Under the pieces are notes generated by a model that was given only the letters and a program-made list of their open reading frames with translations, was not told where the DNA came from and made no database searches. 64,000 nt of DNA from Botryllus schlosseri (lineage: Eukaryota): assembly GCA_051294905.1 (NCBI GenBank), contig CM119373.1:3596001-3660000 (forward strand), written 5' to 3'. This document shows, piece after piece, positions 955 through 64,000 of the stretch; position 1 is the first letter of the stretch; the number at the start of each line of letters is the position of its first letter. A program made the translations under genes and the position numbers.

Positions 955-3178
955 GAGAATCTACTGTCAACATATCGACAACATCGGCACCTTTACCCAT
1001 GACGAAACCTACTGCCAACAGCATCAGCGATAACATCAGTGAGAATGACCTTTAAAGTGAAGGATAATTGTTTTCATAAGCATGAAATAGTCTTTTCTTT
1101 CAGTTCAACTTGAATATGTTTCATTCATTTCCTTCAAAAAATATACGTGCCTATATTTTTACTTCTAGACTCCATCACCTACCATTGAACCTTCTAATGT
1201 CATGAACGAAATATTGGTTTTAATTTTTATGAATTCTCATTCCAGCGAGGGAGTCTACCACTGCAGGCGGACATGCAATGAATACGACACGAAATCAAGC
1301 AGACGAGAGTTCTACTGAAGGTTAATTACAAGCTTACTTCCAGTACTCAGAAAACTATTAGTAATCTTAACGAGCGGGTGGTGTTGAACTGGTCCTTGAG
1401 AAACAAATTCCACGGAAATAGTCATAGCTAATATCTTTATTCAATATTTGAATAGTATACTTATATTGAAATGAACCCGGATATTTTCGGCTGACAGTCG
1501 ACAGGGATAATCGTGAGCAACTAGTAGAGAATTTGAAAGAACATTGTACATGAACAATCGTATCACAAAATATGACGTCACCAGCATGAAATTTGGAATG
1601 AGAGAGCGTTCAATGCACTATTTCCAAGTGGTACACGAACTCCTTCTGTGGACAGAGTTTTGGCCAGTGTATTCAATATTTGCGAGTTTTGATAAACAAA
1701 TTTCTGAATAACTACAAAATTTATTTGAATACTAAGTTTTCCTTGGAATAATTGGCATAGTGAAATCTAATTTCCGCTGCTTCTACTACAAGCATACACA
1801 CTATTATCTGTTTGCTCATGTTATCAGGTGCATTCACAACCATCGCGATCCATACTACTTTGCCAAATGCGAAGGAAAAAGATGTGAAAAAGATACCGCT
1901 AGGTAAGGTCTGGAGCAACGAAGCCTATTGCCATGCAGGCCATGGTTATTGAATTTTTACAAGTCATTGTAATGCTACATCGCTACTTTTCTCCATGTTG
2001 CATGCATTATTTCTCACACAAAAAAACAAGGCTCCCGCTAAATAGGACTAAATATGCTAAATTTAACCAATCGGCTACATGAAATAATGAAAGAAGTGAT
2101 GTGACCAAGCTTTAACATTATGTGCTAAATCCACCATGGAAAATAGCTTCGAATTCAGCACGCTTAGAGGTAGATAAAACATTGTCACTCGACTCCATTC
2201 CCAAATATATACCACAGAGAACGTTGGCAATCCATACTAAATTGAATAGTCATTGCGCTTATTGGTAACCACATTATTGCTACATCAGGTCTGCATTGTA
2301 TGGACAATTATTGTGATCATTATTCCAGTCATAAGTTATAAAAAAAATGGATATTCAGGCAGCAACTGACTGCCCGGTCATTTGTGGTGGAAATATTCCG
2401 TCATTAGTTTATATATTACACTGCGTTCATGAATCTCAAGTGAGCAAATGCCAATTGTGAAAAAAGATTTAAATTGTTTGCATATCCATTTATTTTTGAT
2501 TAAAATGCATTCTAAATGAGCCTATGCATGATTGATAACTAGTTGCATTAACTCTCAACAAGAAACTTCTACTTACAGTACATTGAGATTTACTTTGCAT
2601 TTCAGCTAGTAGCAGCTGGCCGCCGGAAGCTTGGAAGTACTTGCTACCAATAATATTGTTGACATTGCTGGCAATCATTGTGTGTATCGCATATTGGCTG
2701 TACAGGTATGAAGAAGATGTCTTTTGAAACTTTTAAGCTCAAGTATTGATGTTGAGATCCCTGGTAAATTTAAATGTAGGGCAAAAGAAGTCAACTATTA
2801 GTTTGCCTCTGATAAAAGCCCAGGGAATGATCGTTTATCAATTTGAAAACATTACTATACCAAAATGTAGTAAAATATATGAGCTTGGATTAGGATTTTG
2901 ATCAAACTTAGATTCACGATTTTCACAAAACTGTATGCAGGTTTGGACTCGGACATAGTATTTTTAATAAATTTCAATTGTCATATACCTGTAGACTGCA
3001 TCCTGGTCCTCACTGGACCTGAAGCTCACATCTTGAACTAAATTTGGATTCAAAAATCTAAAATCTCTTCATCGCTGGCATGATATAAGTCAAATACATT
3101 TTCTTTTGCAGCAAATCAAAATCTCCGTCCAGAAGAAAAGAAGGCAGAGACGAACATATTTCCACCATAGCGTTATGA
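955..3178 (+). CDS. Gene G0, 3' part only: Thr/Ser-rich stalk + TM + short tail; probable paralog of the CUB-mucin family
   Basis: Exons 955-1038, 1246-1320, 1828-1902 (all phase 1-1), TM exon 2606-2705 (EAWKYLLPIILLTLLAIIVCIAYWLY, phase 2) and last exon 3112-3178 (SKSKSPSRRKEGRDEHISTIAL*). All junctions are GT-AG and in frame. The TM aligns with gene A (QAWHIAVPIAILLL). 5' exons lie outside the window. Confidence 0.75.
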
Positions 3179-5970
3179 TATTTTCCGCAGCCGAAGCCAC
3201 AGTGCCAAATATCATTCATTGGAAAATATATGACTATTTGTAACGCTACTGCCAGCCATGAATATGGCAAACCGCACGGAAACACCAATTTGACAGAATT
3301 GTATATAAATTCCAAATTTACAGATTTGTTGTTGACTTTTAGTGGACATATTTTATAAAGTTGGGTTATACTGACAATTTGAAAATCAATAGAAAATTTT
3401 AACTATACGATACAAAGAGAATTGCACTGCCATCATATATATATATATATATATCGCGATCACTGATAATTTTTATGGGCGACATGAACCAAAGTCATCC
3501 AATAGGCTAGTTTACGCAAGACATTGTCAAAGAAGCAACGGAAAAACTATCAACCTTAATTCAGTTGGCCTAATTTCACACATATTGTCAAGTCATGGTA
3601 AATATTGTAACAGTAAGATTGTATGTCTTGTATATAAGGTTGTATGAGTCTTGATTAAATGAAAATGAGACATGTCATTATTAATACTGAATATCATCGC
3701 ACTATCGTCTGGACTGCAATGAAAACGCAGCTTGGAGTATGTTTATCATCGCAAATTCCGGATATCTATGCTCAAAATAAATAGGATTTGATAATGGAAT
3801 GCGTCTATGTGTGTTGTAGTTTTGTCTGGCCTGCAATTACAGCGCAGACATAGAAGAGTCTGAAATTGATAGAACGAGTTAGACATGTTTTGCCATCTGA
3901 TCAACAAATTCGGCAAGTGAGGTTTTCTTTAGTAGGAAGGGACATAACTTTCTTTGTCTGCATCAGTATAGTAGGCCTACTTAGAATATGAAGATGCCAA
4001 GGAACCGCAAACTTCTGGTGCTAGCATCACCATTTTTACAATGAACTGTCTCGTCACCCAGGGATTGAATTAATCTCCTACCGATCAAGAAGCTGAACAC
4101 TTTACAACAGTGTTATCTCTTCACTCTCAATTGATTTGTCTGCCTTGGAGTCGACTTCAAATACGCAAACCTAGTTTGTGCCAACAAAAGGAATTCGTGT
4201 ACCAACTAAAAATATTGCATAGAGTTTGAGCGATCTCATAGCCAGGATTATTCGAAATTTCACGCAGAAGAAGAAATGTATATGCAAGACAGGTAAATGT
4301 TGGAAATTTGACTATAAGATGAATCGATCCAGCAAAGGTTATGTCTATTAACGTTTTTCTAGGTATGACAACTGCAAGATAGCAACACAGCTATTGTCAA
4401 ACACCAGTTTACCGCCGTCGATCAATCAGGAAGTTATTGACACGGGCAAGGGAAATATCAGGTGGGAAAGAATATAAAAGATAAACCAGAGCAAAAATGT
4501 ATGTTATTAACGTCACGAATGCATTGCTATAGACGTCATTATACCAACGTTCATTTTTTCTCATATATCTGTGGTAAGATATATAACTAGATGAATCCAA
4601 ACTAGATGAAGCATTTTGCAGGAAAGCATGTCATGAATCGTTATATTAATTAAACTCTAGTTGCTAGTAGCGATATGATCATGATCATATAACCAATTAT
4701 TGGTAGAAAGCTCAATATGAATTGTAATGTGATAACAAGTGTGATCAATGATGCCTAATTGTAATAGTGTTACCAATGGATATTCTGATTATAATTGATT
4801 AAACAACAAAATAATATGCGACAGGAAACAATGATCATGTAACGAGCAGTTAGTACCCGATACAGGTTAAAAAGATAACGCTAGCAATGCCGTAGCGTCA
4901 TGTTAATAGAGGATGTCCGATTATATCTATTATTATCCATCATAAGGTAAAAGTAGATAGCCAAAATGGGACATGATGTACCGTTGCATCTATTGGATAA
5001 CAACTGATTCACAATTAGGAATGATTTCAGTTGGTTAAGCTTATTCAATTATGCAAAGCGTATGACATTCTAATCAATCAAGGGTTCATTGATAGCTGTT
5101 ACGTTACTGCAGAATACCACACAGGGTGTTACGTTACTGCAGAATACCACACAGCGTGACTCCCAAGTGCCAATAGACAAAATTCCTTGAATTGCTAGAA
5201 TTATTGTAAGTATACAGAATCCAAAGATATCGTGTATCACGAGGCGAGGATTTTATTAGAATGCGAGAATCCCGGGATGTAGTCTAATGCCCCAGCGCCA
5301 GCTGCAGAGTTTCTTATTTATGTTAACTTTTTTCATGTAATTATTCTTATTATTTCAGTACGATACTATGATCAAAGAATGCAATGACTTAAATATAAGG
5401 CAGTGGATAAATAATATTCATACTTAATAGTATTGCATTATGTCTGCACCCTGAACACCATGGTTTTCAAAATGAGGATATCCGAGTGCAAAAATTATGT
5501 AGAGTCGCTTATTTAATATTAGCTGGCATTGTCAAAACGTGAATTTACCCCAGCACCATCACCATCATCGCATGAAGTTAGCTGGAATATCTGCTAGTAA
5601 CATGCTCCACAAGAAAAACAGGAAATCACTGGGGCACGAACAGTAATCGTTGGCTGGAACTATGTGTATGTGTCTAAATGACCAAAACTCCGAAACCGTT
5701 TAATATTTCAACAGAGACCCTATGTAAAAAAGTATGCCGGAATTGGTTTATTAGTGTCCGTCACGTTCATTGAATTCTGAAACGTGATAGTTTTAAAGAC
5801 TCTGCTGTCACGATCATAGCATTCAGTAAATAAGATTGGTTTGAGGAGTGACAGAGCTCAATAGTACTATCCACATGGTAAACGAGGTTAGTTCTTCGGC
5901 ATTAACTGACATTCTTTCTGTGGCAGATTTTACTAAAACATATTGAAAGCTGAATAATCCAGTACAAAGG

Positions 5971-8900
5971 ATGGTGAGCATTAAAGGAGTTCAAAGATGC
6001 ACGCTGATAATATTTCTTACATCTGCTTTCCTAAACACAGGTAAGTCCATATTTTCAACAATTTTGTTCTAGGGGAAAAGAATCCTGCTAATCAGCACAA
6101 CTATGGCTCACCACCGTGTACCTAAAGCCATAAAATAACATAGACCATTTTGTAGACAAACTGTATCCGTAAGACATTATTTATTATACCAGAGATTACT
6201 GCAGGTCCTAGATGATGTCTGTTTTGTTAACCATTTATTAGTCATCTGGCAATATTTTGGGGATAATCCTAACCTTCAGAGAAACCTTTCGTATGGCCTA
6301 AATAAAATCTTGCCACACAGCATCAACCAAAGACATCCTGACTTCAAAATGTGATGGCGTGACGGAGTCAAGGAATGGAGACTTCGGATTGATGGACGTC
6401 GCAAACAACATGGACCCGAATTGCGAGTTTCACATGTCAACCCTCGCCAGCTTGAGAAGAGACCTACTTTTATTTGACACTGCCAGAATGAATTGCACAG
6501 GAAATGGAGTAGTTACCTTCCCAACAGGACGTAAGTCGATATATATCATACTTCTAATGGAGTCAAGGTAACTGGTGGCCTATAATTTTCACGAGACCGC
6601 AAGAAATGAAAATCCACAATAACCTTCGAATCATTCAATTCTCATGAAATACAAAAACATACCTTATGATTCAACACTAATAACTACACGAAATGGAATC
6701 GATCACTGATAACGATCGGGAACAATATGGTCCAACAAAACACGCTCCAAGAACTTATCTCTAGAAGCAATAATGTAATATCTGTTGAATGTTTGCGGAA
6801 AATATGTCTACGACTGATGTCAATTGGAATAATGATATATCAGCGTGTGTATAAAGGTATCTTTGATGTAGCCGAAGAGACAGAAATTATGTTGGTACGA
6901 CAGATGTGAAGTAAAAGTGATAGGCAATCAAACAACATAGAGCACCGATGATGATATATTGATATATTATGTAATATATACTTTGAAGGTGTCTGATGAT
7001 TTCATGGCAATTATTAAGCCCCATTTCAGAATGACAATCAACCATATTATTATCAATTCTAGAAGTAGGGGAATTTGGAGTGTATTAGAGATTATCTCTG
7101 ATCAAGATGCATTTTTGTTGGATATTCTCAAGTACTTGCATAACTTTTGTGTAATGCAAGCAAATCCGTTCACAAATTCCATCTATACACGATGCCTTGT
7201 GAATATTATAACATGAAATAGGTAATCCAGAACGGTCAAACTTATTGCGTGACAAATTTAGGTGGGCAAAAGAACTACTGCAATCAGGACAAATGCCTGG
7301 TGTTCAAGAGAAGAAGGAATAAATACACGAATGAAGATATATTGGCGACAGTCCGAGATGTGTTTCCAACATGCATCGAGTACGATATCCGAAGAAAGCC
7401 AATCCCTAAGAGAATAATTGCAACACCGGAGACAAAGTCATTCACGCTGAGATACAAGGTTTTGGAAATGGTGATATCCACAACACATGCTTCACAAGAT
7501 ACCACAGCTTCTAGCGTCACGGACCATTTGTCTGCAACAGGTAACGAAACTTGATCATTTTAATGCTACCGACTACATGTCCGTCATAGAACAATCCAGA
7601 TTCAATCTTCTAGAAAAGAGATGCTAATTAGACCTATTCATTGATCCGTGACCAAAGGTTGGGATGAATTATTGTTCAACTGACTTGCGTCAGAATAATT
7701 GATCACTGACTAATGACGCATTTGACGCATGCCGCTACGACGCACATGATATCAAATCATGACATACCAACGGTTAAATTACAGTTCATTTATAATAAAC
7801 TGGATGTAATGACTGCATTTAATACGTGAACTGCAGACATCCAGCGATTGTAAATGCTTGTTATAGAAAATAATTCAAATTAAGGTGGTCAGAAATGATT
7901 TGCCATTATATGCTATAGCATTCCATAATATAACAATGTTTTGGCAATGTGGTTTTATACTGTTAGGAGCTTGACGACCCACCACAATATATATATATCA
8001 ATGTTAGCATTAGAAAATTGTGGATTTCCCTCAACGTTATTACTATTCAATGAATGCTGTGTTCTTGACTGATTCATGTATTGCATATTTTAGTCTTTAT
8101 CCAGATACTTTACCGAACTAACCACGGTCTTGTCTCTATTTATTTCAGATCAGCAGTCAGAATTACATACAACGGCTAATGCTATTGAAAGTGCAACATT
8201 ACTAGACACCACTGTCTCAGATAAAGATTCATGTAAGTTAGTATATATAAGGTAGATATTATTTAGTTATCATGTATGAACTCTGCAGTAATCTCAATAA
8301 CATCAACTAAATATCAGATTCAAAACAATTCGGATTAAAACCAATATGGTGAAGTTTGCTGTGGTACAACATGTCATAACTGCCTTTAAACCAACAGCGT
8401 TTAGGTAATACGGATTTATACTTGAGGATCCATCAGTATAAACTATGTTGGTTGCATTTGAAACAGTTTGAATTACTATTTGCAGTATTGCTGTCAATGT
8501 GTTGCCCTTGGCAGTGCTTATTGTATCGGTAAACATTTAGTTTTCACCCTGATACTGCAGTATGCTAGGTATTGACGTCTCTAAATTGACTTCAGATCAG
8601 AAGTTACGACTACATACAACATCGGCCGCTACTACAAGTTCACTAGTGCCAGACACCACTGCTTCATCAAAAGATTTAAGTGAGTACACATACAAATTTA
8701 TAATTTACAATAAACTGGGTCATAACCTCAAAAACATCAACTACAATGCAAGTTAGTTAGCATTCGGGATGTTCAAAATGAATCACTGTCTTTTCACGCC
8801 ACATGATTCGAATCCTGTCAAGTTTAATCAATCATAACAGTCATATTATGCATAAGGTAAACAGTGCTTTAAATCAGAAAAGCAGTTTTGTTAGTCCGCT

Positions 8901-10573
8901 CACTATAGAAGTGATATAAAACTGTTAGCTGACAAGACAGAGTAATGGTGGAGTGTCCGGCCTTTTGGTCGGTAGGTTGTGGGTTTAATCTCTGGTCGGG
9001 TCAGACGAAAGACCTGGTTAGTAACATTGGCATCCATGACTTCCCCACTTGGCGCTGACCAGTACCGGGATAGCATGGCGGGTTGGTGCAAGACTTAGAA
9101 AGCCGTACAAGGCTATACCTGCACCTTCCTTGTCCAGCGGCATATCATGCACTCACAGAATGCATATGCACAAATTGGGTGTATGCATATCATGAGTCAG
9201 TGTGCCGCAAAAACATCAAGGACAAAAATATACTGCGTCCTATTCCTACACATACAATATATCAATATTTCAGTCGGAACACCTACATCTGTCCAGACAA
9301 AACCTACTCCAACCAAAGAAACGAAAATTGAGACATCCAAGATCGTGCTACCTGAGGCAACAACAAGTATGCATGATATTCATTTATGATCAATATAATA
9401 ATGATCAATCACCATGGATTGCGAAAATCCCTGGAGAATATCATAATATAGACTACCATTTTTTCGTTGCATAACTCAATGCTTATATCACAGTGGATCA
9501 GCAATATCCAACAACCAGACAAAGACAACAAACAGTAATTGCAGGAACTTTCGGGGATACAGCTCTAACTGAAGAGTGGACAAGTAGGTCTTGCTATATC
9601 ACTATATACTATCTTGGTTAATCGGCATTATACATGCACATAATATATATATATACCGTGTATACTTTTAAGTGGAGTTTGGACTTCCATCCACACTCAC
9701 TAGGAATCAAAAGAAAATTGCCCAGAAGCACACATCTGCACATACGTGCACTTTTCAGTTTTATGTGATCCATAAAGTCGTGTTACTGACATTATACTAT
9801 ACTGTACGTACGAGGGTCATAACTAAAATGCAATTCCACGTGCAATAGGTTCAAAAGCAACGCACAACTATGAACCAACGACTGAAGGAATCACATCAAA
9901 TCGAAACGAGGACGCTGGGATTAATCACACATCTGGCATTTTCAATAACGGCGTAGCAGGTATGGCTTTATATTCAGTTACGACAAGGGTATACAAGCTT
10001 AGCATTGATTTAGTGGATTTAGGGATAGATCTTGGTTGCGACTATCAACCTTGAGTTTTAATTTAATACAATTTATCACTTTATAAGTAGATGAATGCAC
10101 AATTATTGTACCATTTCCGTTTTCATTACCGCCAAATACTTCATTAACAGGCCTGCGGACTGTATAACTAGCCTGTCTCTTGGCTTGCTACTAGCTCCGT
10201 CATAAATATTAAATTACACAATGTCCAAAATGCTTTACAGGTCTTGGAGCGGCCAGAAATAAGAGCGACCAAGTTCAAGCATGGCATATAGCTGTCCCGA
10301 TTGCTATACTCCTGTTGATAGCAGCCGTTATCGTGATGATTTTGATATTCAAAAGGTAAGATTACAGTATATTTGCTGTCATTGCTTCAATCAATCTATG
10401 ACTGAAAGCTATTTTTATGTGATTGAATACTTCGTGGATGAAGGCACAATTTTAATTGCTATAGAACTGAAAAATTATGTAAAAAATTCATTCATATTTT
10501 TTAAATCTTCAGCAAGGACAAGAAAAAAGATCCAGAGCACACAGCCGCAAAGTCTGTTCCCGCACAAGCGTAG
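5971..10573 (+). CDS. Gene A: type-I membrane protein, CUB-like domain + mucin stalk + TM (398 aa predicted)
   Basis: 10 exons: 5971-6040 (signal MVSIKGVQRCTLIIFLTSAFLNT), 6321-6530, 7262-7540 (CUB-like), 8149-8232, 8596-8679, 9274-9366, 9494-9583, 9849-9959 (stalk), 10241-10355 (TM WHIAVPIAILLLIAAVIVMILIF), 10513-10573. Total 1197 nt, open frame, all GT-AG. Confidence 0.88.
8930..9252 (+). mobile_element. tRNA-derived SINE (family 1) in an intron of gene A
   Basis: Degenerate A/B-box head, then GGTCAGACGAAAGAC...CTTCCCCACTTGGCGCT core. A homologous copy lies at 18165-19322. Confidence 0.7.
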
Positions 10574-13500
10574 AGAGACAGATTACAAAAGGCAGAGATG
10601 CTGATACTGGTCACTGATCCGATTTCAAGATGGAAGTGGGTTAAAAGACATCAGTAATTTACAGAAGCTGAAGACGCAAGTTTTACACGCAAGCCATCGG
10701 TCTGACCCGGTCGGCCCACAGCCAATCAAGAAGCCGGATGATCTACCACTATGCAATCTTTTTTATCAAAACGTACTGGTTCACAAACAATTGGGAACTA
10801 TTATATTTTTGCCATGCTTCTTCATGGCTACTGTACATCTAAAATTAATAGTTTGTAGAGTATGCTGGACAGTGGAAATTTTGATGCTTGCATTTTTAAT
10901 GAAATTTCATTAACTTTCTCGGTCAAACTTCTACTGTGTCTCATTTTCGGAAAATCTATATTAGTATCAATATATTTCGAGTCGTCGGGAGAGGTGATTT
11001 ACATTTTCATTTGTGTGCCTTGGCGTCAACATTTACCGAAATTAGTCAGCCTAGTTTGTGCAAACAGGGAGTTCCTGTATTATCAAAAAATCTACATTTA
11101 GCTTAAAGCGGTCTCTTTGCCTCGAATATTCGAAATTTCATGCCGGTGTCGGCGTATTTAGTGATATGATTGTTGATCTACAATGTTTTTTTCAATTCTC
11201 TAGCTGTACCTGCAAGTCTCTTCCAATATATATTAATATATATATATATGATGAATGGAATTATTACATGGGTGTACCTTATAATGGACTATATATATTG
11301 ATACACAATCTGACAGGAAGCAATCCTATGCTACAGAATGCGTAGATTTAAAACTTAATTCGAGGGGCTGGAAAGAGAAAATAAAAGCTTTGACGCTGAA
11401 CTGGAAGGATGTTTCCATCATAAAAAAGCAATTTCCTTAATATGGAATTGTAACGTGATAACAAGTAAACTGTGTGATCAATGATCCTTAATTATAATAC
11501 TGTTAGCCATGCATTTCCTGATCATAACAAAAAAGCATTTTGTCATTTTGCAAATTTGTCATTTTCTCTAGCTATAATCTAACCAGAAAATATATGCTGA
11601 GCTTTGATGGGCGCAGTAGATATTTAACCTATTGTACCCGTATGCATCAATTATGAATCAGAATGGATGAGAGATGCAGCAAAGTTGATAATATTTGGAA
11701 GAAGATTTCGGCATACTTTTAGATAATCGAATTATGAGTAATATGTGACAGGAAACAATGATCATGTACCGAGCAGTTAGTACCCAATAAAGGTTCAAAA
11801 TATAACACTGGCAATGACGCACAGTCGCGATAATAGAGGTCTTCTGATTATATCTATTATTTTCCATCACAATGTAAAAGTATATAGCCAAAATGGGTCA
11901 TGATGCACCATTGCATCTGTTGTGTCAACAATGATTGACCAATGAGAGTGATTCCAGTTGGATGACCTTATTCAATTGTGCAAAGTGCAGTTCTTTCAAA
12001 TCAATGCAGGGTTGGGTGATAGCTTGCTACGTTACTACAGAATAGACATAATATCTGAAGTGGTTACAATTTAAGCATGACAAATATGCTTTATTAAGAT
12101 GGCATAATGATATCATTAAAGTCAACCAACAAATATTTTATCACAGAGTAGTAAGATATGGAATCCTACTTCCTGTTTTCCTATTTCGTTTTGTGAACGT
12201 CAATTTATAATTCCATACTAGAGTTGACTACAGTGGCAGAATTACAAGCTAATAACTTTCATACCTTGTATGGCTGTCCAGTGAAAGGCCCAATATGTCG
12301 GACAAATTGATTTAAAAAATAATTCGTCATTATTACCGCCGTATAATTTCTACGAGCATTCACTGTAATTTGATAACATCGGAACGAATTAGAGAGATAA
12401 CATGAATTATTACGAAAAACTTATACAAGAAAAGCCCGAGCAGACTTATTGTCTGCACCAAAGATATCATGGCGTGAATTTTGTTAAAATGGTAGAATTA
12501 TGGGTTGTCATGATGTATAGCTACGCAAGCGCCAGCTGAAGTGTTTCATAATTTCGTTAACATGTTTCTCCGTGCAATAAATCTTATTATTTCAGCACTA
12601 TAGTATGATCAAGAAATGCAATGACTTCAATATTCAGCAATGGAAAAACCATTCATACATAATAGTGTTGCTATCTGTCTGCACCTTGAACACAGTGGTT
12701 TGAATAATGAGGATATCCGAGTGCAAATATCACGTAGGTTCTCTTGTTCAATATTAGCTGGCATTGTCACAATGCGAATTTAACCAAGCACCATCACCAT
12801 CATCGCATGAAATTAGCTGGAATACCTGCTAGCAACATGTTCCACCAGACAGACAGGAAATCACTTGGGCACGAACAGGAGTCGTCCAATGGAAACAGCA
12901 GAATTGGCTGAAAATGTGTGTATGTGTCACAATGCCAAAAAATCCGAAACCATATACTATTTTAATCAAGTAACATGTACTAAAGTATGACTGAGTCGGC
13001 TCATATGTGTCTGTCACGATCATAGCATCCTGAAACGTGATAGTTTTGAGTAAACACTCTGATGTCACGATCATAGCATTCAGTAAACATGATAGTTTTG
13101 AGGAGAGACAAAGTTCAACAGTACTACCTACAAGTTAATCGAGGCAAGGTCTTCGGCATTAACAGATATTCATTCTGTAGCAGATTTTAGTAAAATACAT
13201 TGAAACTTGAAAAATTCATTACAAAGGATGGTGGGCATTAAAGAATTTCGAAGATGCTATCTGACAATATTTCTTACATCTGCTTTCCTAGGAACAGGTA
13301 AGTCGATATTTTCACTCAATTTGTTATAGGGAGGAAGATCTTGCTAATCAGCACAACTATGGCTCTCCACTGTGAACCTATAGCCATATCATTCGGACAT
13401 TATAGGTGATACCACAGACCTTTTTCAAGTCAAAGGTAATATTTCAGAATTCCTAAACATTTATTAGTCACCTGGCAATATTCTGGGGATAATACTAATC

Positions 13501-13969
13501 TTCAGAGATGCCTTATAACATGACATAAATAAAATCTTGCCACACAGTATCAACCAAGGACATCCTGACTTCAAAATGCGACGGTGTTGCGGAATCAAGG
13601 AATGGAGACTTTGGATTGATGAATGTCACAAACAACACAAATTCGACTTGCGTATTTAAAATGTCGAGACTCGCCAGCTTGAAAAGAGACTTATTTTTAT
13701 TTGACACCGCCAGAATGAATTGTACAGGAAATGGAGCAGTTGAGTTCCCAACAGGACGTAAGTCGATATATGCTTGTAATGGAGTCTAGAAGGTACCTAT
13801 AATAACTAAAACCATTATATCTTCTTGTAAGGTACTGCTACTTTATACGAAAACATTCTTTATCATTTAACACTAATAATTACATTGGTTCCTTGTGATA
13901 CAGAATTTGAATATTGCAACGAGCAACACATTCATATTCGCAATTTAATCGCTCTAAGCGCAAAACTAA

Positions 13970-14810
13970 TCTGATACGAAAGCTTGTTCAGTTGTTCACA
14001 GGGATCATATGATTTGTAGTAAGTCCGAACTTGAATCTGAATTCTTCCAGTCTAATCGATATACAGATCACATTGTGAAGTCCACCATTGACAAAAAACT
14101 AATTGACTTCAGAGCCACTAAATTCATTGGACCCGGTAAATGACCAGTATATTTACATTTACCACGGATTGGTAAAGTTTCTGGTAGATTTGAGAAGCAA
14201 ATCATGCCGTCTGTTTGTCAATGTTTCATGGGGGAACAGCCTGGGATTGTTTTCAGCACAAAATCTCTCTTTCCTGCAACACAGAAGGATGTACTACCTG
14301 CCTCAAAACAGAGTAGTATTATTTACAATTATACGTGCCGCTGCAACAGTCGGTATGTGGGCCGTACTTCACTTCGTTTGTAATAAAAAAAAAATCGACC
14401 AACATGTGCCCAAGCAGATTAAAAAACCAATGCTAATCAATGCAAAAGAAAATCAATGCTATTTCAGACAGTCAATCGCAGACAAGCACCCCTTCCTTGC
14501 GAGACTATGACCAGACCATTACATGTAACTCTGCAATAGGTCAGCACCTCCTTACGCACACAGAGTGTGCAAAATCATATAACGATAACAGATTTTCAAT
14601 TCTTGCTCGCGGACGTAGTCTGTTCCACATCATAGCCAATTTGTATTCCACCAATTGCATTTTTGCTTAACACTCTCGTTTTGTGAATTCTCTGGTTGTT
14701 GTTGTTATTTAATTCTTATGTCACACTACCTATTTCATCTTTATATTGCGAATTGCAATCTCCGTATTTACTGACGGCCACTCCCGACGAGGGTCAGTTG
14801 AAAAGCTTAA
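13970..14810 (+). mobile_element. Penelope-like retroelement 3' fragment (RT C-terminus + GIY-YIG endonuclease), decayed
   Basis: Reads VVHRDHMICSKSELESE...GPGK*PVYLHLPRIGKVS...QKDVLPASKQSSIIYNYTCRCNSRYVGRTSLRL...QHVPK...SAIGQHLL...FSILARGRS with stops and frameshifts. It is absent from the homologous intron of gene A. Confidence 0.85.
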
Positions 14811-16417: not shown

Positions 16418-16840
16418 TAGGCTTACCATATTTTGAAAATGTAAAAAGAGGACACTTTTTCAGAAATTTGAAAGATGCAAAACCGGAGTAGAATTCGGAA
16501 AAACCTGTGAATTTTTCCCACCAAAAAGGTCATCACTTCTGAGCAGCCGTTTTGCACTCCACATTACCAGGTGGATGACTAAAAAAAAAAAAAAAAAAAA
16601 AGGGTCAACTTTTCGCTCAGAGCTAAATTCACCGGTTTTCACTCCGAAATATCCGCCGCAGCGTCACTTCTATGCTAATTTGCGGCATATCAGTCGCAAT
16701 TTGCTCTAAATCTGACCTAAATTTTCAAAAAAGAGGACAAAATCTCAAAAAAGAGGACAAAAGGGCGTCCTCCAAGGACACTCTCAAAAAAGTCAAAAAA
16801 GAGGACAAATCCTCTTAAAAGAGGACGTATGGTAAGCCTA
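16418..16840. mobile_element. hAT-type MITE, specific to gene B
   Basis: TIR TAGGCTTACCATA / TATGGTAAGCCTA, perfect 8-bp TSD CAATATAT (16410-17, 16841-48) and subterminal AAAAGAGGACA repeats. The empty site is in gene A at ~7985. Confidence 0.92.
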
Positions 16841-20939: not shown

Positions 20940-21031
20940 TTGCCGTAAGAACGGATAAACCTCCGACAGGAATCGAACCGGGTCCGTCAGATTGGTGGAC
21001 GCTTATCGTTACCACTACGCTATCTCCCCTG
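20940..21031 (-). mobile_element. tRNA-derived SINE head (family 2) inside the Harbinger element
   Basis: Minus strand GGGGAGATAGCGTAGTGG (A box) ... GGTTCGATTCC (B box) ... GGAGGTTTATCC, shared with 42395-42502. No acceptor stem can be formed. Confidence 0.65.
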
Positions 21032-51300: not shown

Positions 51301-52771
51301 CAAACTTACAGCTAAACAACCATTCACGACAGAGGAAGACAGACTAACAGAAAAGACTTCAACTTCAGATGAAGATTTGAGTGGCGAAAGATATACCATA
51401 CAAAGTACTGAAAGACTGCAATTGGTGATAAATGTAGACAAAAATTCTCATAACCCTGCAAACCCGACTGAAGCGAATAGCGAGGTGGTCAAGCCATCGA
51501 CTGGAGCAAGTACTACAAGCAACATGTTCACCACAAAACAACCATTTACAGAAGAGTATGATGAAACAAAAAGTCAGAACTTGAATTCCAAGGAAGATTC
51601 AAGTTATACAGCATATGATGTCCAAAGTACTGAAATAATGCGCTTAGTAACAACAGAAGATGGCAGTAATCGGGGAAGCCAACCAATCCTGTCAACGAGA
51701 GCTCTAAATAACAGAACAGCCATGCTGAGAGATACAATAGCCACAGCAACAGAGGGATACCACACACAATCAGGTAAGCAAAGCAGTTCCAAATGGAGAT
51801 GATCGCAGGTGTCCAACAGTCAACATTTAGTAGGCCATAATTCAAATAATTTCAAGTCGAGACATAATGAATGTGTCACTGCGAATACAGCTCACGTCAA
51901 GCTGTAATCAAGGATTACGTTTGTGGGCGTAGCACTTCGATATGGTTTAAAAATAATTCAAGCTATCCAATGTCATGTCTATTGACGGGCAAAAGAAACC
52001 CCGGATTCGGAACCCAGTCAATTCAGTTTTCATGACATATAAATCCTTTCCAGCATGTACAATTGAATCAACATGAATAATAGAACCTAATATTGGGCAT
52101 AACTGGCCACTGACTTGAACGAGGCAATTTTCGTGCTAAGAGATCCGGTTCAAATGGAAGTGATAATGCAAAAAGTACTACAATTGTTCTAGCACTCAGC
52201 TCGCTTATTCAAGAACCACACTCATTCTTTTGAATGCAATTGCCAAGATGCAAGATACCCTGAACATAGGTGGTGCACATGCCATCCATTCTCATTCAGT
52301 TGATCTTGAAGATCAGACAGAAATGATACTTGGAAATTTATAACGAGACACTGTAGCAGTTAACTGTGTATTTTAATAACAAAGCATTGAAGTTTCCTTG
52401 GACTGGGAAGGTTTTCGTGCTTTTCTAATCCGGCGAACAACTATTTTCGATCTCAAGATGCATTTAGGCTGTTAACTAACCAGCCATTTGAATACTGTCA
52501 ATTTATATCTTATGTTTTATTACCCGGCGATACAGATCAACCCAGTGGCAAACCAAGTGAAGACGCAAGTAATATCTGGATTACGGTGATAATTCTTGGA
52601 GTGTTGCTATTATTAGGCATCGTAACGCTCATCGCATTGATAATCAGAAAGTAAGATTTGGCAAAATTGCGATCGCGACAAGTTAATATGTGGTCTTCAA
52701 CGTATCCTTATCTCTTTTGCAGGAAATGGCATAATGACAAATATCATTCTGGAACAATTCACAATACATAG
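45398..52771 (+). CDS. Gene E: CUB-like + long mucin stalk + TM + short tail (479 aa predicted)
   Basis: Exons 45398-45455 (signal), 46826-47047 (C..NRDCDWTF..IIMHIMDVDIDCNKGYL), 50778-51773, 52536-52650 (TM IWITVIILGVLLLLGIVTLIALII), 52723-52771. Total 1440 nt, open frame. Confidence 0.87.
46097..46660. mobile_element. GACTCGAGTC hAT MITE (copy 3)
   Basis: TIR CAGGGTTGT / ACAACCCTG. Aligns with copies 1 and 2. Confidence 0.85.
47056..50192. mobile_element. Non-autonomous hAT element at the exon-2 donor of gene E
   Basis: 15-bp perfect TIR TAGGGCAAGTTTTTG, GCAACTTT subterminal repeats, perfect TSD GTAATTAC (47048-55, 50193-200). Confidence 0.93.
47115..49661. mobile_element. Nested foldback hAT derivative with ~1.2 kb inverted arms carrying transposase C-terminal remnants
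   Basis: Ends TAGGGTGGAGTG / CACTCCACCCTA, perfect TSD TTCGTAAA. The arms encode decayed YCPSWFEIK, AYFAHP and HNQAVERDVKVVTEA motifs in opposite orientations. Confidence 0.9.
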
Positions 52772-54880: not shown

Positions 54881-56402
54881 CATCACATTTTACACGTGCA
54901 AAGTATACATAAATATCAAATATCAAAATATCAACATCAATTGAAAGGGTATAGAAATATAATTTTTGCAAGTGCGCAATTTTCACTTCAGTCTGATGTT
55001 ATAAAGTCAATCATAAATCATTTATATGACTCTAAAAGTTCTAAACCATTGGTTTCCGAAAGGGGGCTATATCACCCCATGGGGAAGATTTTGAGAAAGA
55101 AGGGGGCACAAATAACAAATGAGTCGATTGTGGCGCGTAAAGGTTCAAAGGTTCAGTCAATGTTATTGATAGACAAGCGACTCAATGCTTGACTCATTTT
55201 AGCATAGGAAAGGTGAAAAGGAAGGTTGGGCCTCACTGTTCAAAACCGAAATTTGTATACTACACGGTGATTTCCTAGCATATTACGTGTGGACCCCTTA
55301 TTTCTCAATCTACATGTCAAGGCCTTCTTATAAATATTCTCACACATTCGAATTTTGATGCACCCAGTATTTACTACCAAGATACTGACAATGACATGTC
55401 AGAATGCTGTACGATCGGAAACAAGACAAGACTACACATGTCACAAGACGGGTTCCAGTTGTGGCTTTGATCTCAGCTCCATGAACTTGGCTAGACCTCC
55501 AACAGATTAAACAGTATTCTAGGCAGACTAACGGTTATTATGGTTACCTTTTTTTCTGCAATAAAGTTTGCAGACCCCTGACCTACACAATGTGATGGTT
55601 AATATGGTGAATCCCAAATTAATGTGGTCATGTTAATATTTGGAAGAGACAAGATACATATCCGATCTGAAGCCCGATAAGGGTACCTTTGGCAATAAAC
55701 TAGAAATGCAGAATATTGATGAATGATGAAATTGTTTACAGTACCAATCAAAGAAACAATACTAACCTACCCATCATAACACTCTAGAAATGTTTCTGAT
55801 ACAATTGGACTTGAATCGACCAATAGAGATTATGCTGTTCATAGTAACCAGGACTATATTGATGCTCACAGTTTGTCTATGCATCATCATGGGAAACATG
55901 ATACAGAAATAAATTCCTTTAATATGATATCTCTCAGGATTCACTGCGTCAACTGTCAAGTTTCTACCTACAACATGTACCGTGCAACAACAGGGAGATA
56001 TGGATTTCAGGACTATAAACGTCACGAAATAGACTGGAAAAAATTGCAAATTCGACCTCGAAATTTTAAACCTGGTCAAACTATCCAGAGATGTTATTCT
56101 ATTCGATACAGCAAGTCTGAATTGTAAAGGTGGAGGAGCTGTCAAGTTTCCTTACAGCTCTCCGACACAAAGTTAGTACTCTTCCCTATTGTTTGGAATG
56201 AAATGAGCAAGTAGTCTAGTCATCTAAACCAGGCGTTTCCAAGCTTTTTTGATCACCTAGGCTACCCCTTCAAGTTTTGTGGATGGTTACACGTACCCGG
56301 AAAATTCCAGATGCCAATGACTGCAAGATCATTACATCAAGCTCAACTCTCTTTAAGCTACTCCATGCCTGGAATAACATGGCCAATGACTGAACCGGAC
56401 AA

Positions 56403-57013
56403 TAGGGTTGTTCAAAAATAACTTTTCTCCAGATTCCTGGGATTCATTGATGATATTGTTAATTGCCTAAAAACACGCTGCACATCAAATTTGGCTCGAT
56501 TTTACCCAGTAAAAGCCGACGCAGAGACAATTGTAATTTCTGAATTTATCACCGAAATACAAATTTTAAAATTTTACTGTAAACCCTATAAAAGTGTTAA
56601 GTTGCCTAAAAGTACGATGCAATACAATTTTTGATCACTTCCAACTGGTGGAAGTGAAGTTATTGCAGTTGAAAGTTTTTAATTCGTGAAAATAGCATTG
56701 ACGGTGGAAAAACCCAGAATTATTAATGAAAAACTCAAATACCTCCGCTTCTACGGGTTGGAACAGCGTCAAATTTGTTTTGCATCGTTTTCGTAAAAAA
56801 CTGAACAATTCCATGAGGTTAACAGTAAAATTAGAAAAAAATTCTAATTTTTCTTCATAATAAATAATATGTTTGGATTTGCTCTGTCGGCCACTGCTGG
56901 TAGTAAGAATTGAGCTAAATTTGGTGTGCAGTGTTCTTTTTTTTTTTTGCAACCCAACAATTTAATCAGGGAATCCCAAGAAACCGGAAAAAAGTTTCTT
57001 TTACGCGACCCTA
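56403..57013. mobile_element. hAT-type MITE (older)
   Basis: Ends TAGGGTTG / CGACCCTA, TSD CCGGACAA/CTGGACGA (6/8). It is related in sequence to 54523-54880. Confidence 0.7.
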
Positions 57014-57669
57014 CTGGACGAGGTAGTCACAGCCCCACTCATGACGTCATTCGCAATAAATAATCTGATTTTATAGTTTGTTAACAACGTATTGCCCATG
57101 CACGGACCCCTTTAAACTAGATCGCGGATCCCTAAGGGGTCGTGGACCCCAGTTTACAAACCCCTGATTGGGACCATTGCTCTTCAACATTTTCGGTTCA
57201 AATGGCGAACTCTCAAAGTTATTGTGATGAAGTCAAACACCGTGTTCACATGACAGGTAGACTGAGGTAAAAAGTGGCAAGAAAAATCTTTATGCATATC
57301 ATGATGTCAATTAAACTGGGAGCTGTCGGTGACAGTTCAATTATGGCTCTTGGTAATATTTATTGTCATAAAACAGCATTCAGACAGAGTTGAGAAAATG
57401 AAAACGATGCTATTTAATGACCGTTTTGTTGTTTCACAATATTACCAAATATCCATCGGTTGAAACCTACATATTTATATATTACTGCAGTATTTACAGC
57501 CACATAGCACCAACAGGCAGATTCCTCCTTCAAAGTTCACAGACGTTTCGAAATTATGAAAATATTTCCATAAAAATCAGTTTTGTACCAGAACTGTGTC
57601 TAGACTGTCCGTATTTAATGGTATACAAAGTTTAACGCCGGCTCATACATATATGGATGGATCGGGGCA

Positions 57670-60438
57670 GGGTCATTCCATCCCAAATCAACCAAATTTT
57701 TTTCAAAAGATAACCCTATGGTCATGGATTTTATTCAAATCTCACACAAAAGGAGACAGTGATCTCCTGATCAGAAAAAACTTGATTTTATCGAAATCGG
57801 ATAAGTCGTTGAGATTTTATCGCAGTGAGAAAAATACCACTTTTTGCGTTCATTGAACCATGTCAAAATGGCATTTCTGAACAACTTATTTTGCATGGAT
57901 CTTTATACATGATGGGCTTGAGTTTTCGTGGGTGAATCAACGTTTTTGAGACCGCTGTTAAGTGAACTTTGAATGTGAACAATAATATGCTGGATATTTC
58001 AAAAGTTTATGGGTCAAATGAGCAGAGACGGTTGGACCCCCAAGGAAATCAGTCCTGCATGACAGAATTTTCTGGGCCGAATTGTGAAAAAAGGTATACC
58101 TCAAATTTATTGAGTAAGGTATCAAATGAAAGCTAAGAACAAATACAATGCAGTAATAGGAATCCCAATAGTGATTTCAAGGATCTAAGCAGTGTTATAG
58201 CAAGAAAACTAAGGCCATGATATTTCCCCCGTGTCAGAAGGTATTTTGGGGGGCATAATTTATACAGCTGCTTGGTTACGTGATTAAGTATATTAATTAG
58301 CTAGCACTGTCCATTTCCTTCCATGGTGCAAGTGATATCAAACATTTAATCAAGTTATTATTCAGTCAAAGATATAAGGAAGTGCCTAGTTCTATATTAT
58401 ACATAACATTTCACTCTAACATGTCCGAGTAACCAATACATAGACAGTCATAGACAGAACCCCTGAGTGTGCCTTTTGGGGTGTTGTTGTTTCGTGACAC
58501 AAGATTTTAATTCATGAAGTTGCATGTGGTGCATTTTCGGAATGCAAAATTTTGAATCATTGAAAATATCATAGGATTGCTTTACAAAGCACAATCAGTT
58601 GCAAATATTGCTTTGTAATTTGTGTCATAATTCGTATCTAACCGTTCTTTCTTTGAGCACCTCGTCTATCCTTAGATTAAATTACCAGCTACTGGTTAAT
58701 ATCAGAAAAAGAATTATATTAGGCCTACTTTGTTGCGCTTTTATGTTACTTTTCTTCGCACGTCACTTGTTGCTGTAATGCCACAAAATGAACGTAGGGT
58801 GAGATTGATTAGGCATGTGCTCCCAAATTCCATCTTCATCTTGTCACAATTTGGTGAAATATATTTATATTCTAGCTCTCGAGATAGCGCCTCATTTGGC
58901 AAACTAATACCATTACAATCAAGCTTCTAGGTCATTGTATTTGGATTTGACACCAAATTTTGTAATGATACATCATTTTGGATAAAATATGGTTTGGGCA
59001 GGGTGGTGATACGATATTGGCCATTGTCTTTGAACAGTTCGTCATTCTTATACATTATCTTTAAAACCGCAATTCTCGATCATTTGTCTCCATTAGTTTA
59101 AAAATCATCTGTAAGTAGTTAATTTGGTCATTTTAATCCTTAGGCCTACTAATAGAAAACAATCAAACTTGAATGGTCCAACAAATATGGTAATCACACT
59201 GAGTGTACAAGTCAGGATATATTATAAACTTGTCAGCATACATGATATATTAAAGCATTTCTGATTGATGTATCTATCCGGTTCATGATGAGGTTGGAGA
59301 ATGTGAATTCATGCAAGACGGTATACTTGTGATCAACCCACAAATTTTACTACTGTGTTTGAATACGAAAAATGGAAATTAGACATTCTCGACTTGGAAA
59401 ATGTCTCTACAATTGATAATTATCAATTATAATTCATAATCTATAAACATGAACATGTACTTCGTGTTTCAAGTTTTGTTTTGCTTGAATGACTGATGAG
59501 GCACTGCCCCTACCAATGCCGGTCACAAATCTCAATTTTGCGAACAATTTCAGTTATGCACTTGGACGGGTGACGCATACATGTGACATTGAGCTTTCAA
59601 GATGAATCTTTGCCACTTAAAAAGAATAATTCCTATGGAACCAGATCATATGTGCACAGTGCAGTTATCAAAATTATCTTTTTCAACCATGCACAGCTGC
59701 TATACCGCCCGACTATTTGAACATTAATAATCTATACACAATACACCACTCACCAAAATATGAAATATAAAAAGCTGGAATATCAAGTAAGCCCTGCCCC
59801 AAGCTATTACATATGCTTAATGAAGTATTAATCTATAATTTATCAAGGTGTATAAAAAATATATAACCCAAAATACCTTTAGACACATGGGAAATATATG
59901 AATATAGTTTTCTTGTTATAACGCAGCTTAGATCCTTGAAATCACTATTGGCATTGCTTTTATTGGACAGTGCTCGTTCTTAGCTTTCATATGATACCTT
60001 ACTCAATAAATTTGAAGCATACCTTTTTTCACAATTCAGCCTGAAAAAAGTCATCACGCATGACTGATTTTACTCCAGCATTACCTTTAGCCCCCCTTTC
60101 AACCCCAAACGGCTAGGTTATTATCATAATAAAAATATTCAAAATGAGTGTTAGGCTATGTACTTTCTGAAAATGTACTCCATTTAAAGCCACAGAGAAA
60201 GACTAATTTACAGTAAAATTCTAAAGTTTATGATCTAAAAAATGATGCCTCTTAACGGTTGACTGAGCACAAAAAGTGCACTTTTTCAAATCCCCATAAA
60301 TCCTAAACCGCTGAATGGATTTCCGCGAAATAACTTTTGTTCAGTTTGAAATTGATCTATGTTGCTTAGGAATTGCATTTGATGTTTATTTTGAAACATG
60401 TGGTTATCTGCCTCAGTTGATTTGGGCTGGAATTACCC
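57670..60438. mobile_element. Non-autonomous DNA transposon, Sola2-like by termini
   Basis: TIR GGGTCATTCCATCCCAAATCA / TGATTTGGGCTGGAATTACCC and 4-bp TSD GGCA on both sides. I recognise no intact ORF, so the superfamily call rests only on GGG termini and the 4-bp TSD. Confidence 0.7.
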
Positions 60439-62114
60439 GGCATATATTGTAATTACATCATCAAAGTGTCTTTTTAATGTTTAAGATTATGAAACGAAAG
60501 ATTATTGCAACAACACTGCCGGCGAATGTATGGTGTACAGAAGATTACGCGAGACCTATCCCAGTGAAGATGTATTAGGAGTGGTTCGCGACGAGTTTCC
60601 AAATTGTAAGAGCTACGTCATCAGACCGAAATTTAAACGAGACATAATCGTAGCACAAGCCACTACAGCCTTAACCCTACGCTACAAGCTTCTCCGTATT
60701 CCTACAGCAACAACAGCATCTACTCAAATTTTCGCATTGGCGGATAACACAGACAATTCCTTGACAACAGGTAAGGATGTTATAGAATTGGAAATTTAGA
60801 ATTAAGCCAGGCGTGTCAATATTTTAGTATTTTTTCATGAAATCGGCAAGCAACGAAATTATCAACTCAATTTTGATACTTGTTGATACTAATTGGCCTG
60901 AAAAATATGAAAGTAGAAAAGTGGTACTCTTCACAGACGATTAGCAATTCACAAAATATCTTTGTTTTAGTTCCATACAGCTTAGCACAAACGTGAATCG
61001 AAACAGTGACAAGCAGAGGACAAAGAGAAAAGGGAGTAGACACAACAGCAGTACCAGACGTGAAAAAAGACACCACATCTTTTACTTTGACAAGTAATAA
61101 ACTACAACATCCGTAGAACACTGCAAAAATAACACAGGCCAAATAATCAGTATCCCTGACAGTAGCAGTAGACTTTAGATTATCAAAATTGCATGGACAT
61201 AAGTGGTATTTCGAACATTTCTGATTGTGAAACTTTCATTGGAGCTTAGCTAAAATTCGTAACGTATCAGGTAAACACAACAAGTAGATATATGAGCTGT
61301 GCAACCGGACACATACTGTTCCAGTAAATGGTTTATCTTTGTCACAGCTCCAGTTGACGTATCACAAACGATAAATGGACTGGTCACAGACGGAAAAGCC
61401 ACAGAACAGGGAGAAGCCACAAGAGCAGTGCCGGATGAGAAGACAGACATCACTAAAGCAACACAGACAGCAGTGCCAAAGGATAATACAGCACCAAGTT
61501 TGTATTTAACTTCTTCTTGTGATAAGAGTGAATTTGACTGTTTACCATAGTAACTGATTTAATACAGTGGCTATATTACTCTGTGAAATGTAAGTTTTGA
61601 CTTCTACAGTACAATAAGTCACATATAATATGTGTGCTTTTCAATCAAACATATTAACTTTCTTTAATGGAGAAGTAATGACAGAGAAGTGTCATATCGT
61701 TATTACCGTGACATAATACGTTGGAAAATCAACATTGGTCGCAATTGCCATAAATCTGAAATATTGTGTTGCTGGTGACGGCCATAGTGAATTTATAGCT
61801 ACAGTACTTAATCCAGGATATCATTTAAGATCAAGAGTCAACCACAAACCAACAACCTGCTGCAACTGAAAGTTTAATGTCGAAATTAACTGGCGGTCAG
61901 ATCGCTGCTATTGCCGTACCTCCAGCATTAGGAAGTCTTGTGATTATGTGAGTAGCCTGTAATTCAAATGATATCACCTTAAAGAAAACTATGAGCAAAT
62001 TCTATTTTCATAGAGCAAGTTTGATACTGAGCAGAAGAAGAAATGGGATAGTCCATCGTCACGAAAGGATAATGTCTCTTGATAAAAAGGAAGAAAGCAA
62101 AGTTCAGCCTGAGC

Positions 62115-62680
62115 CATAGGCGCCGAGTTACGGCCACCCCATACAAAATGCTTGAACGCCCGCCGTCTATGATTTCAAAGTTTTGTATATTTCTATTGTC
62201 TGGCCAGTTCGATACGACATCAGCCCTAAGAGATCATCAGCGCTGTCAATTAGCGAGTCCCTGATATCGCGTAAATGCCTACTATTAACCATTAACCGAT
62301 ACGCGAGCGATTATTTGAATACATGCATAATACGCCCCAATAAATTGTTATCCGTGATTAGTAATCAGACAATCGAAGCGACGTCTTTTTCGACACGCGT
62401 TTACGACGTTGATTTCGACATTCGTGGGCTGAGGCTGAGAAACACCATCTCCTCTCGACCACACAAGCGAATTCACGTTCTCCTTCTCTTAAGGACGCGG
62501 CATGCGCCCATATTGCTCTTGCAGCAATACCACCTGGATAATTAAAATCGCACCTTCGCGCCATTTCATGATCAAATTCGACTGGCTGATCGGGGCCTCC
62601 GTAGGCCCCGGGCTGATAGTAACCAACCCCTCCCTTTTTCATCTGGCCACCCAATGTTAAAATAAAAGTCGGCGCATAAG
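62115..62680. mobile_element. hAT-type MITE inserted in the last coding exon of gene F
   Basis: Ends CATAGGCGCCGA / TCGGCGCATAAG, perfect 8-bp TSD GCCTGAGC (62107-14, 62681-88). Confidence 0.9.
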
Positions 62681-64000
62681 GCCTGAGCAACGAGTTACCT
62701 ATATGTAGCTGAAAGTTGTGAACTTGGTTGTATAGTGTTAACACAGAACAGCTTTACTCATCTTGATGATATTGTAATTATGATACTGGATAATATCAAA
62801 ATGAACTCACAAAATCATTTGGCATTGAATACTCCCATAAATGATAGACATATAGTGTCTGTTGCTAGCATTGTTGTATTTGAACGAGTGACTGGTATCA
62901 CTAAATGAATGTTGCTTTCAAGACAGAATATTTTATTGAACTTAAACACATTTCGCAACCCTCTTCCCCAGAATAGACAGCACAACCATACTGTATTTCT
63001 ACAAAGATAAGCCAACCGGTTAATTCAAATACTTTTCCGAACACCAAGATTTGATTTGACAATCTATGCATGGCCCAAAAAGTGATAAAGCGCCTTGTCA
63101 AACTATGCCGACTGCCAGGCACTACGAGCCTAGTCAGACAGTGCACAGATAGTATCGTTTTTTTCAAAAATTTGGAGAAAATTGTATTGTTGCTTTTGTT
63201 GCTTGTCATCAAGCCCGGGTGTTACAAATCTGTTGTCAGACATGCTAAGTCAATCATCTCTTGTTTTTAAGCAACCCTGACATCTTTATCATTGTCAACA
63301 TATATTTAGTACTTACACACTCAAGTGAATCAATGCTTATAAAAACAGAAGCTTGAACCCCTTCAGTTTTAGGTGAGACATGTACAAGACTATTTGATCG
63401 TTTATGTTGGTATACATTGGTACATCTTATCAGCCTTATCTATTCATAGATACTTATGGCCATTTCAAATAACAGTTGTTCGTAAGCGTATAGTTAAAAG
63501 TTATGGCAGTTGCCCTTATTATATTTTTCCGCTTTTGTTTTTGAAGCTTGTCAGCTTGTCAACAGCTTGGGAATTCTCACCTGTTTTCGAGCTATCAATG
63601 TTCGTGTATCAACAAAAGCTATCGACAGAAGCAAACCGCGTTTTTTAATGACATGAACGAAAAATATATTGCTTCATGTGACTGTCGTGTGCCTAACATT
63701 GCGGATGATTTTACTCACTGCCAGGTTGAGTACTGCAAGTGACCTATTGAAAAATCCAAAAAACCAGTATTTGTTTGTAGATCAGGCATTTACTGTACAC
63801 AGCAGAAATAGAATTGCAACCAGACAGGCCGAGGAGAAAATCGTGACGTTACAAGGAATCAAGATGCAGTTGTTATCCCTTCTAGTGTTACGTTCTCTGA
63901 TAATTCTAGTTGACTAATTAGACTAATTGGTGTGAAATGTTTCTTTGTTCTAATTCTAACTGTAAAGTAGATTGTGAAATACTTCTATGCACTAATTTTA

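Follow-up and report, generated by a model that had tools for sequence, protein, structure and literature searches.

Single-pass membrane proteins with a CUB ectodomain, such as Neto1/2, Caenorhabditis elegans LEV-10 and SOL-1, neuropilins, Kremen, DCBLD1/2 and CDCP1, serve as auxiliary proteins and co-receptors whose ectodomains bind partners and which mostly act through other membrane proteins, and podoplanin, CD43 and CD164 carry a Ser/Thr-rich extended stalk, one transmembrane helix and a very short basic tail. In ascidians, fester and uncle fester of the Botryllus fuhc region and s-Themis and v-Themis of Ciona are clustered, lineage-specific surface protein genes. Here, we analyzed a 64,000-nucleotide (nt) stretch of Botryllus schlosseri DNA (assembly GCA_051294905.1, contig CM119373.1, forward-strand positions 3,596,001 to 3,660,000; hereafter the window, in whose own coordinates all positions are given), which likewise holds a cluster of genes for type I surface proteins. 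We consider it probable that these genes form an ascidian lineage-restricted tandem family of type I membrane glycoproteins, each built from a CUB-fold head, a mucin stalk, a transmembrane helix and a short tail, and we propose that they work in adhesion or as co-receptors.

Gene plan and transcription of the array

With a GC content of ~37%, the window consists of AT-rich eukaryotic DNA. Along a 62-kb stretch of its plus strand lie seven head-to-tail genes (0, which is partial, then A, B, C, D, E and G) with seven head modules, recovered through an all-versus-all BLASTP comparison of six-frame open reading frames (ORFs) that located paralogous exons, after which splice sites were read from the sequence. 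All follow a common plan of a signal exon, two phase-1 domain exons (a and b) that encode the head, a Ser/Thr-rich stalk, a transmembrane exon and a tail of 17-36 amino acids (aa). Every placeable acceptor and donor of the head exons is in phase 1; a hydrophobicity scan placed a transmembrane exon behind each gene (at ~2.6, 10.3, 26.1, 34.7, 44.4, 52.6 and 61.9 kb); and signal-peptide exons with strong phase-1 donors lie 5' of A, B, C, D and E, with that of G less certain.

Gene A carries the strongest evidence. RNA contigs from four studies, mapped to positions 5600-11599, skip nine introns, all GT..AG on the plus strand, and contig depth falls near zero in several intron bins. In RNA-type runs of the same species, 15-20% of sampled gene A words were present, from at least four studies. 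Because the nine introns are skipped at GT..AG, DNA contamination is ruled out as the source of these contigs. The signal-exon donor and both head-exon acceptors predicted from sequence match the RNA joints exactly, so that gene A is spliced as modeled. Its features are as follows.

5971..10575, plus strand: gene A coding region, ten exons, nine GT..AG joints in RNA contigs
5971-6040, plus strand: signal exon
6321-6530, plus strand: head exon a
7262-7540, plus strand: head exon b and start of stalk
8149-8232, 8596-8679, 9274-9366, 9494-9583 and 9849-9959, plus strand: stalk exons, all phase 1-1
10241-10355, plus strand: transmembrane exon
10513-10575, plus strand: tail exon with stop
5614 or earlier, and to ~11214, plus strand: start of the 5' and end of the 3' untranslated region (UTR)

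The 398-aa product has the type I mucin-like membrane layout: behind a signal peptide come a head of ~140 aa that has six cysteines and a stalk of ~190 aa, 30% of it Ser+Thr, which the end of exon 3 and five symmetric phase-1 exons encode, then a transmembrane helix and a tail of 21 aa (KSKDKKKDPEHTAAKSVPAQA). Over an intronic repeat of this gene (window positions 9000-9400), contig depth reaches 130-380 in run X1 with many loose ends at 9113-9243, which looks like a highly expressed dispersed element outside the gene A transcript.

Genes C, D and E are predicted to follow the same single-pass, mucin-stalk layout, as the initial annotation had proposed for the whole array; their features, with those of G and of the partial gene 0, are listed below, the head exons having been located by BLASTP of ORF pieces.

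955..2706, plus strand: gene 0, truncated by the window start to its 3' part, from ORF pieces and splice sites; Thr/Ser-rich stalk exon ~955-1049 and transmembrane exon ~2606-2706 (WKYLLPIILLTLLAIIVCIAYWLY)
28244..34925, plus strand: gene C, C1 and C2 as one gene, intact ORF of 445 aa, consensus splice sites, in phase
28244-28325, plus strand: gene C signal candidate
29445-29654 and 30723-31031, plus strand: gene C module 1 (C1), head exons a and b
31393-31602 and 32154-32450, plus strand: gene C module 2 (C2), head exons a and b
34638-34758 and 34819-34925, plus strand: gene C transmembrane and tail exons
37116..44627, plus strand: gene D, intact ORF of 443 aa, 10 ectodomain cysteines, consensus splice sites
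37116-37173 and 38936-39154, plus strand: gene D signal exon and head exon a
42599-43438, plus strand: gene D head exon b and long stalk
44355-44466 and 44525-44627, plus strand: gene D transmembrane and tail exons
45398..52771, plus strand: gene E, intact ORF of 479 aa, 10 ectodomain cysteines, consensus splice sites
45398-45455 and 46826-47047, plus strand: gene E signal candidate and head exon a
50778-51773, plus strand: gene E head exon b and acidic Thr/Ser stalk
52536-52650 and 52723-52771, plus strand: gene E transmembrane and tail exons
55938..62119, plus strand: gene G
54223-54298, plus strand: gene G signal candidate, uncertain
55938-56171 and 60486-60770, plus strand: gene G head exons a and b
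61830-61947 and 62014-62119, plus strand: gene G transmembrane and tail exons

The count of seven genes thus holds, with gene 0 partial, but C1 and C2, previously taken as a pair of genes, probably belong to a single gene as its two modules. A short Thr-rich linker is predicted to connect the two exon pairs in frame (donor 31031, acceptor 31393), and one signal candidate and one transmembrane exon serve both. Because the 361 nt between the modules contain no signal or transmembrane exon that we could find, and because the phases match, C1 and C2 most likely form one gene with two tandem head modules, and the idea of separate C1 and C2 genes was set aside on the same intervening sequence. RNA-type runs hold 16-18% of sampled words of the C region (28800-33400). 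In D and E one long exon combines exon b with the stalk, and the a-to-b junction of E agrees with that of a spliced relative described below.

Several introns carry repeats. The intron between the head exons of gene E (47100-49650) holds a large inverted repeat with arms of ~1.2 kb and 80-95% aa-level identity in all frames, and a gene G intron holds a smaller inverted pair (57961-58176 and 59940-60069). One interspersed repeat of ~0.3-0.6 kb occurs in two introns of C (29712-30288 and 32768-33261), on the minus strand in the D intron before the transmembrane exon (43624-43875) and in the first intron of E (46022-46646); another is common to a B intron (18436-19385) and, on the opposite strand, the first intron of D (37615-38632).

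The stalks of the array span 150-270 aa, encoded by several symmetric phase-1 exons or by one long exon, and contain 24-30% Ser+Thr, with the caveat for E that the length printed for its segment appeared incorrect. They are presumably O-glycosylated. Hydrophobic 19-mers score 2.3-3.3 and are followed by basic residues past the membrane, and the stalk and transmembrane region shows sub-threshold Pfam similarity to Podoplanin and TMEM154.

Outside two close pairs the ectodomains are, as first described, very divergent: amino acid identity is ~80-85% for A/B and 78-84% for C1/C2, and 15-46% for all other pairs. Two subfamilies emerge: in A/B/C/G the head has six cysteines, and in D/E the ectodomain has 10. 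When their heads were aligned by hhalign, the cysteines aligned (exon b, 94% probability, E value 1.5e-7; exon a, E value 9e-5), and this, with the identical exon plan, identifies the A-type and D/E-type heads as homologous.

Fold of the head domain

The fold was approached through L001, a 2077-nt Logan transcript (a contig of SRR32906212) and the source of database match P0001, whose upstream in-frame sequence gives a complete spliced head ~50% identical to that of gene E. An AlphaFold model of this contiguous head, built from a 13-row alignment, is a beta-sandwich with one helix (predicted local distance difference test score 72, predicted template modeling score 0.68). A-type exon fragments were also tried in the folding alignment; MAFFT misplaced the pieces, and the A-type exon-a rows were dropped.

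The model superposes on solved CUB domains, a jelly-roll beta-sandwich of ~110 residues. In a scan of 48,161 PDB chains made independently of Foldseek, CUB domains filled nearly all of the first 23 places, led by Kremen (9.2), NRP2 (8.5), MASP-1 (8.3) and cubilin (8.2), with Gpr126, TSG-6, PCPE-1, C1s, enteropeptidase, Neto2 and spermadhesin among the further matches. Foldseek against AFDB Swiss-Prot likewise gave its best template modeling scores to CUB domains (0.43-0.49, with DCBLD2 among the matches), and CUB clusters made up 63 of 100 language-model neighbors. From the side of sequence, the exon-a profile searched against 177,635 PDB sequences returned cubilin first (E value 0.011), aligned on the C-x-W and C-x-x-Y-L motifs.

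These results bear on the alternative that the head is an unrelated small jelly-roll converged on CUB topology, and so a wholly new extracellular domain. Pfam searches with single exons gave no CUB or other relevant match for any head exon, Foldseek against the PDB was noncommittal, ranking cupins, GOLD domains and agarase modules first with all E values above 0.004, and ~35 of the 137 spanned model residues are unaligned to CUB domains, all of which speak for such convergence. We nevertheless regard it as improbable, given that the exon-a profile picks cubilin on canonical CUB positions and that the extracellular, disulfide-rich, animal context is that of CUB domains. The structure and profile matches together lead us to read the head, on the strength of the model, as a domain of CUB fold that contains an insertion and lies too far off for the CUB hidden Markov model (HMM) to detect. 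The CUB-like head of the initial annotation is thus upheld at the level of fold only: solved CUB domains are its best structural matches, and Pfam gives no CUB match.

The part of the model unmatched to CUB domains would be the cysteine hairpin and helix (residues 95-105) that the first part of exon b encodes. By residue count the exon junction falls near model residue 68, and the inserted hairpin and alpha-helix occupy approximately model residues 70-110, from the second exon. CUB domains are marked by four conserved cysteines, paired C1-C2 and C3-C4, and in the Ca2+-binding subset also by acidic Glu/Asp/Asp ligands and a conserved Tyr. Cysteines 1-3 of exon a are invariant, the second and third aligning with those of cubilin, and a candidate fourth cysteine at the start of exon b (FCQ or KCL) was placed by spacing only. 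In the cubilin alignment the Asp of the D-Y-L motif that follows the third cysteine is replaced here by Gly (K-G-Y-L or G-N-G). Since the Asp of the CUB D-Y-L motif is a Ca2+ ligand, the CUB Ca2+ site may be absent in this family.

Turnover, selection and allelic variation

Birth-and-death evolution, proposed from the outset, is supported by the duplication of genes in tandem, of modules and of stalk exons and by the disruption of two copies. The lesions reported for two of the six complete genes were found in B and G. In gene G, head exon a is interrupted by an in-frame TAG (56030-56032), and gene B, an A-like paralog, has a +2 nt frameshift in an A8 run directly past the exon-3 acceptor that leads to a premature stop, as well as a degenerate stalk exon 5 whose acceptor has changed from AG to AT near 17445. 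Its exon-8 segment (210 nt) is duplicated, at 19494-19705 and 25649-25865, and the two copies flank an insert of ~6 kb with an apparently intact PIF/Harbinger gene pair.

13228..26795, plus strand: gene B, from exon-by-exon alignment to A and direct repeats
~13228-13297 and 13548-13757, plus strand: gene B first exon and head exon a
15678-15961, plus strand: gene B head exon b, frameshifted
16995-17075, 17837-17929 and 18027-18110, plus strand: further gene B exons
19527-19637, plus strand: gene B exon 8, with a second copy at ~25682-25792
26064-26178 and 26733-26795, plus strand: gene B transmembrane and tail exons
19706..25648, no strand assigned: insert of ~6 kb between the duplicated exon-8 segments
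23536-24597, minus strand: PIF/Harbinger transposase ORF, 353 aa (Pfam DDE_Tnp_4, 1.5e-30)
21576-22010, plus strand: Myb/SANT-like ORF, 144 aa (Pfam Myb_DNA-bind_5, 2.7e-10)

The array is thus turning over by tandem duplication of A/B, whole-module duplication in C, stalk-exon duplication, transposon insertion and inactivation of B and G, and gene conversion between paralogs is probably shaping it as well.

The ratio of nonsynonymous to synonymous substitution rates (dN/dS), estimated by the Nei-Gojobori method, was 0.26 and 0.29 for the two head exons of A/B and 0.18 and 0.27 for those of C1/C2 (dS 0.30-0.45), 0.25 for the A/B transmembrane exon and 0.4-0.7 for stalk exons. Because head dN/dS is 0.18-0.29, the young duplicates are under purifying selection, and the excess of nonsynonymous change expected of a recognition receptor is not seen in the heads of A/B or C1/C2. 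For the older members, nothing here shows that their deep divergence (15-46% identity) was adaptive. Across the gene A transcript, from UTR to UTR, allelic contigs depart from the window sequence by ~1-6%, with no concentration in the head, and the changes listed for the X25 allele comprise 8 nonsynonymous and 9 synonymous codons. The description of the receptors as rapidly diversifying is therefore not borne out, given the low head dN/dS and the spread of allelic differences over the transcript and its UTRs.

One patch stands apart. Within 30 nt of gene A between the first two head cysteines (6397-6427), the contig of run X25 has nine changes, three of which recur in X29; eight of the nine are the base found in paralog B, and N-glycosylation sequons are altered, from NNMDPNC to NNTDSTC. 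This pattern suggests A/B gene conversion, an assembly chimera being less likely. Together with the tandem arrangement, the very divergent heads and the pseudogenes, a B-like patch that resembles conversion feeding allelic diversity is what would be expected if the array were a variable self/non-self or immune recognition locus, with polymorphic, diversifying heads whose loops encode specificity. We think this unlikely, as it conflicts with the purifying selection between young duplicates, with the near-equal codon counts of the X25 allele, with differences that extend into the UTRs and give no sign of a head hypervariable against the species background, and with tails in which no YxxL/I tyrosine motif (of the type found in immunoreceptor tyrosine-based activation or inhibition motifs) was seen by eye across their 17-36 aa, no motif scan having been made. 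We also hold out little expectation for a more specific version, in which these are ascidian-specific variable receptors whose loop patches and sequons are shuffled among heads by gene conversion to yield allelic specificities for self/non-self or gamete recognition, a process that the B-like tract in gene A alleles would exemplify.

Proposed mode of action and comparison with known systems

Our preferred reading remains that of stalked CUB-fold adhesion or co-receptor proteins. The membrane-distal head of ~145 aa would adopt a CUB jelly-roll split by a phase-1 intron, to which the second head exon would add a cysteine-bearing hairpin and alpha-helix missing from canonical CUB domains, and the predicted single transmembrane helix would lead into a short basic tail of 17-36 aa. 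We propose that the stalk holds the head off the membrane and that the head binds an extracellular protein or glycan partner. Because the tails are so short, any signal would require a partner membrane protein, as with CUB auxiliary and co-receptor proteins; alternatively, these could be pure adhesion or capture molecules or components of the glycocalyx. Immune, allorecognition or gamete roles are less probable.

Several points weigh against this reading. The Pfam CUB HMM does not match even the contiguous head (L001:27-1301) at an E value as lenient as 10, and the head model comes from a shallow 13-row alignment of a relative ~50% identical to E and not from a protein of the window, no A-type head being contiguous. 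Splicing is seen directly for gene A only, the models of C, D, E and G and most signal exons being predictions; the B frameshift falls within a homopolymer, where an assembly error might have produced it; and a binding or co-receptor function is what we infer from architecture.

The family is near-absent from the protein databases searched. Its exon-b profile, compared with 1.84 billion representative proteins, gave four singleton matches from Logan/ENA assemblies, three of which are probably genomic read-through models. Searches for homologous proteins with E exon b plus stalk and with the L001 head returned nothing or the query itself, AFDB clusters held no closer fold relative of the head, and a literature search found no description of the family, in keeping with its earlier designation as undescribed. 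It is transcribed, as seen for gene A, probably restricted to the ascidian lineage and apparently undescribed. The spliced L001 transcript, from another sample, has a KKYH tail similar to that of E, and because it encodes an E-like member, the D/E subfamily exists beyond this locus, in a distant paralog or a related species.

Such restriction, with fast divergence and four database matches, raises the alternative of gamete-surface or egg-coat interaction molecules, whose fast turnover would explain why they are invisible outside close relatives; the CUB fold of the head would suit this role, CUB domains being common in fertilization proteins such as spermadhesins and ascidian sperm proteases. 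We judge it unlikely, since gene A words turn up in RNA-type runs from four studies or more, a spread that speaks for fairly wide or abundant expression, and since the young pairs are under purifying selection.

What is gained here is a solid annotation finding and no new mechanism: a whole expressed surface-protein family can evade ORF- and Pfam-based annotation because its exons are short and its CUB head has drifted past HMM reach, and it was revealed only by RNA evidence and structure prediction together. For ascidian work on adhesion, co-receptor function, fertilization and immunity, it offers a compact locus with clear birth-and-death dynamics.

Among known systems, fester, uncle fester and the Themis proteins are built from CCP/SCR, Ig/EGF and PKD/fibrinogen-like domains, unlike the present family, to which we found no sequence or structural link, and comparable polymorphism was not seen in gene A contigs. 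Podoplanin, CD43 and CD164 lack a folded cysteine-rich head, and their similarity to the array proteins is compositional and below Pfam thresholds. The single-pass CUB co-receptors combine CUB with LDLa, FV/VIII, kringle or LCCL domains and have longer, conserved tails, whereas the head of this family is paired only with a mucin-like stalk, in a fast-evolving tandem array with no detectable orthologs outside close relatives. The CUB domain itself (PF00431), as found in Kremen, neuropilin, MASP/C1r/C1s, cubilin, TSG-6 and spermadhesins, is the nearest fold of the head, from which the family differs in its extra cysteines, its inserted hairpin and alpha-helix and its lack of an HMM match. The array would add to the known CUB domains a distinct variant that has an inserted helix and additional disulfides and that sits in a minimal protein made up of head, mucin stalk and transmembrane helix.

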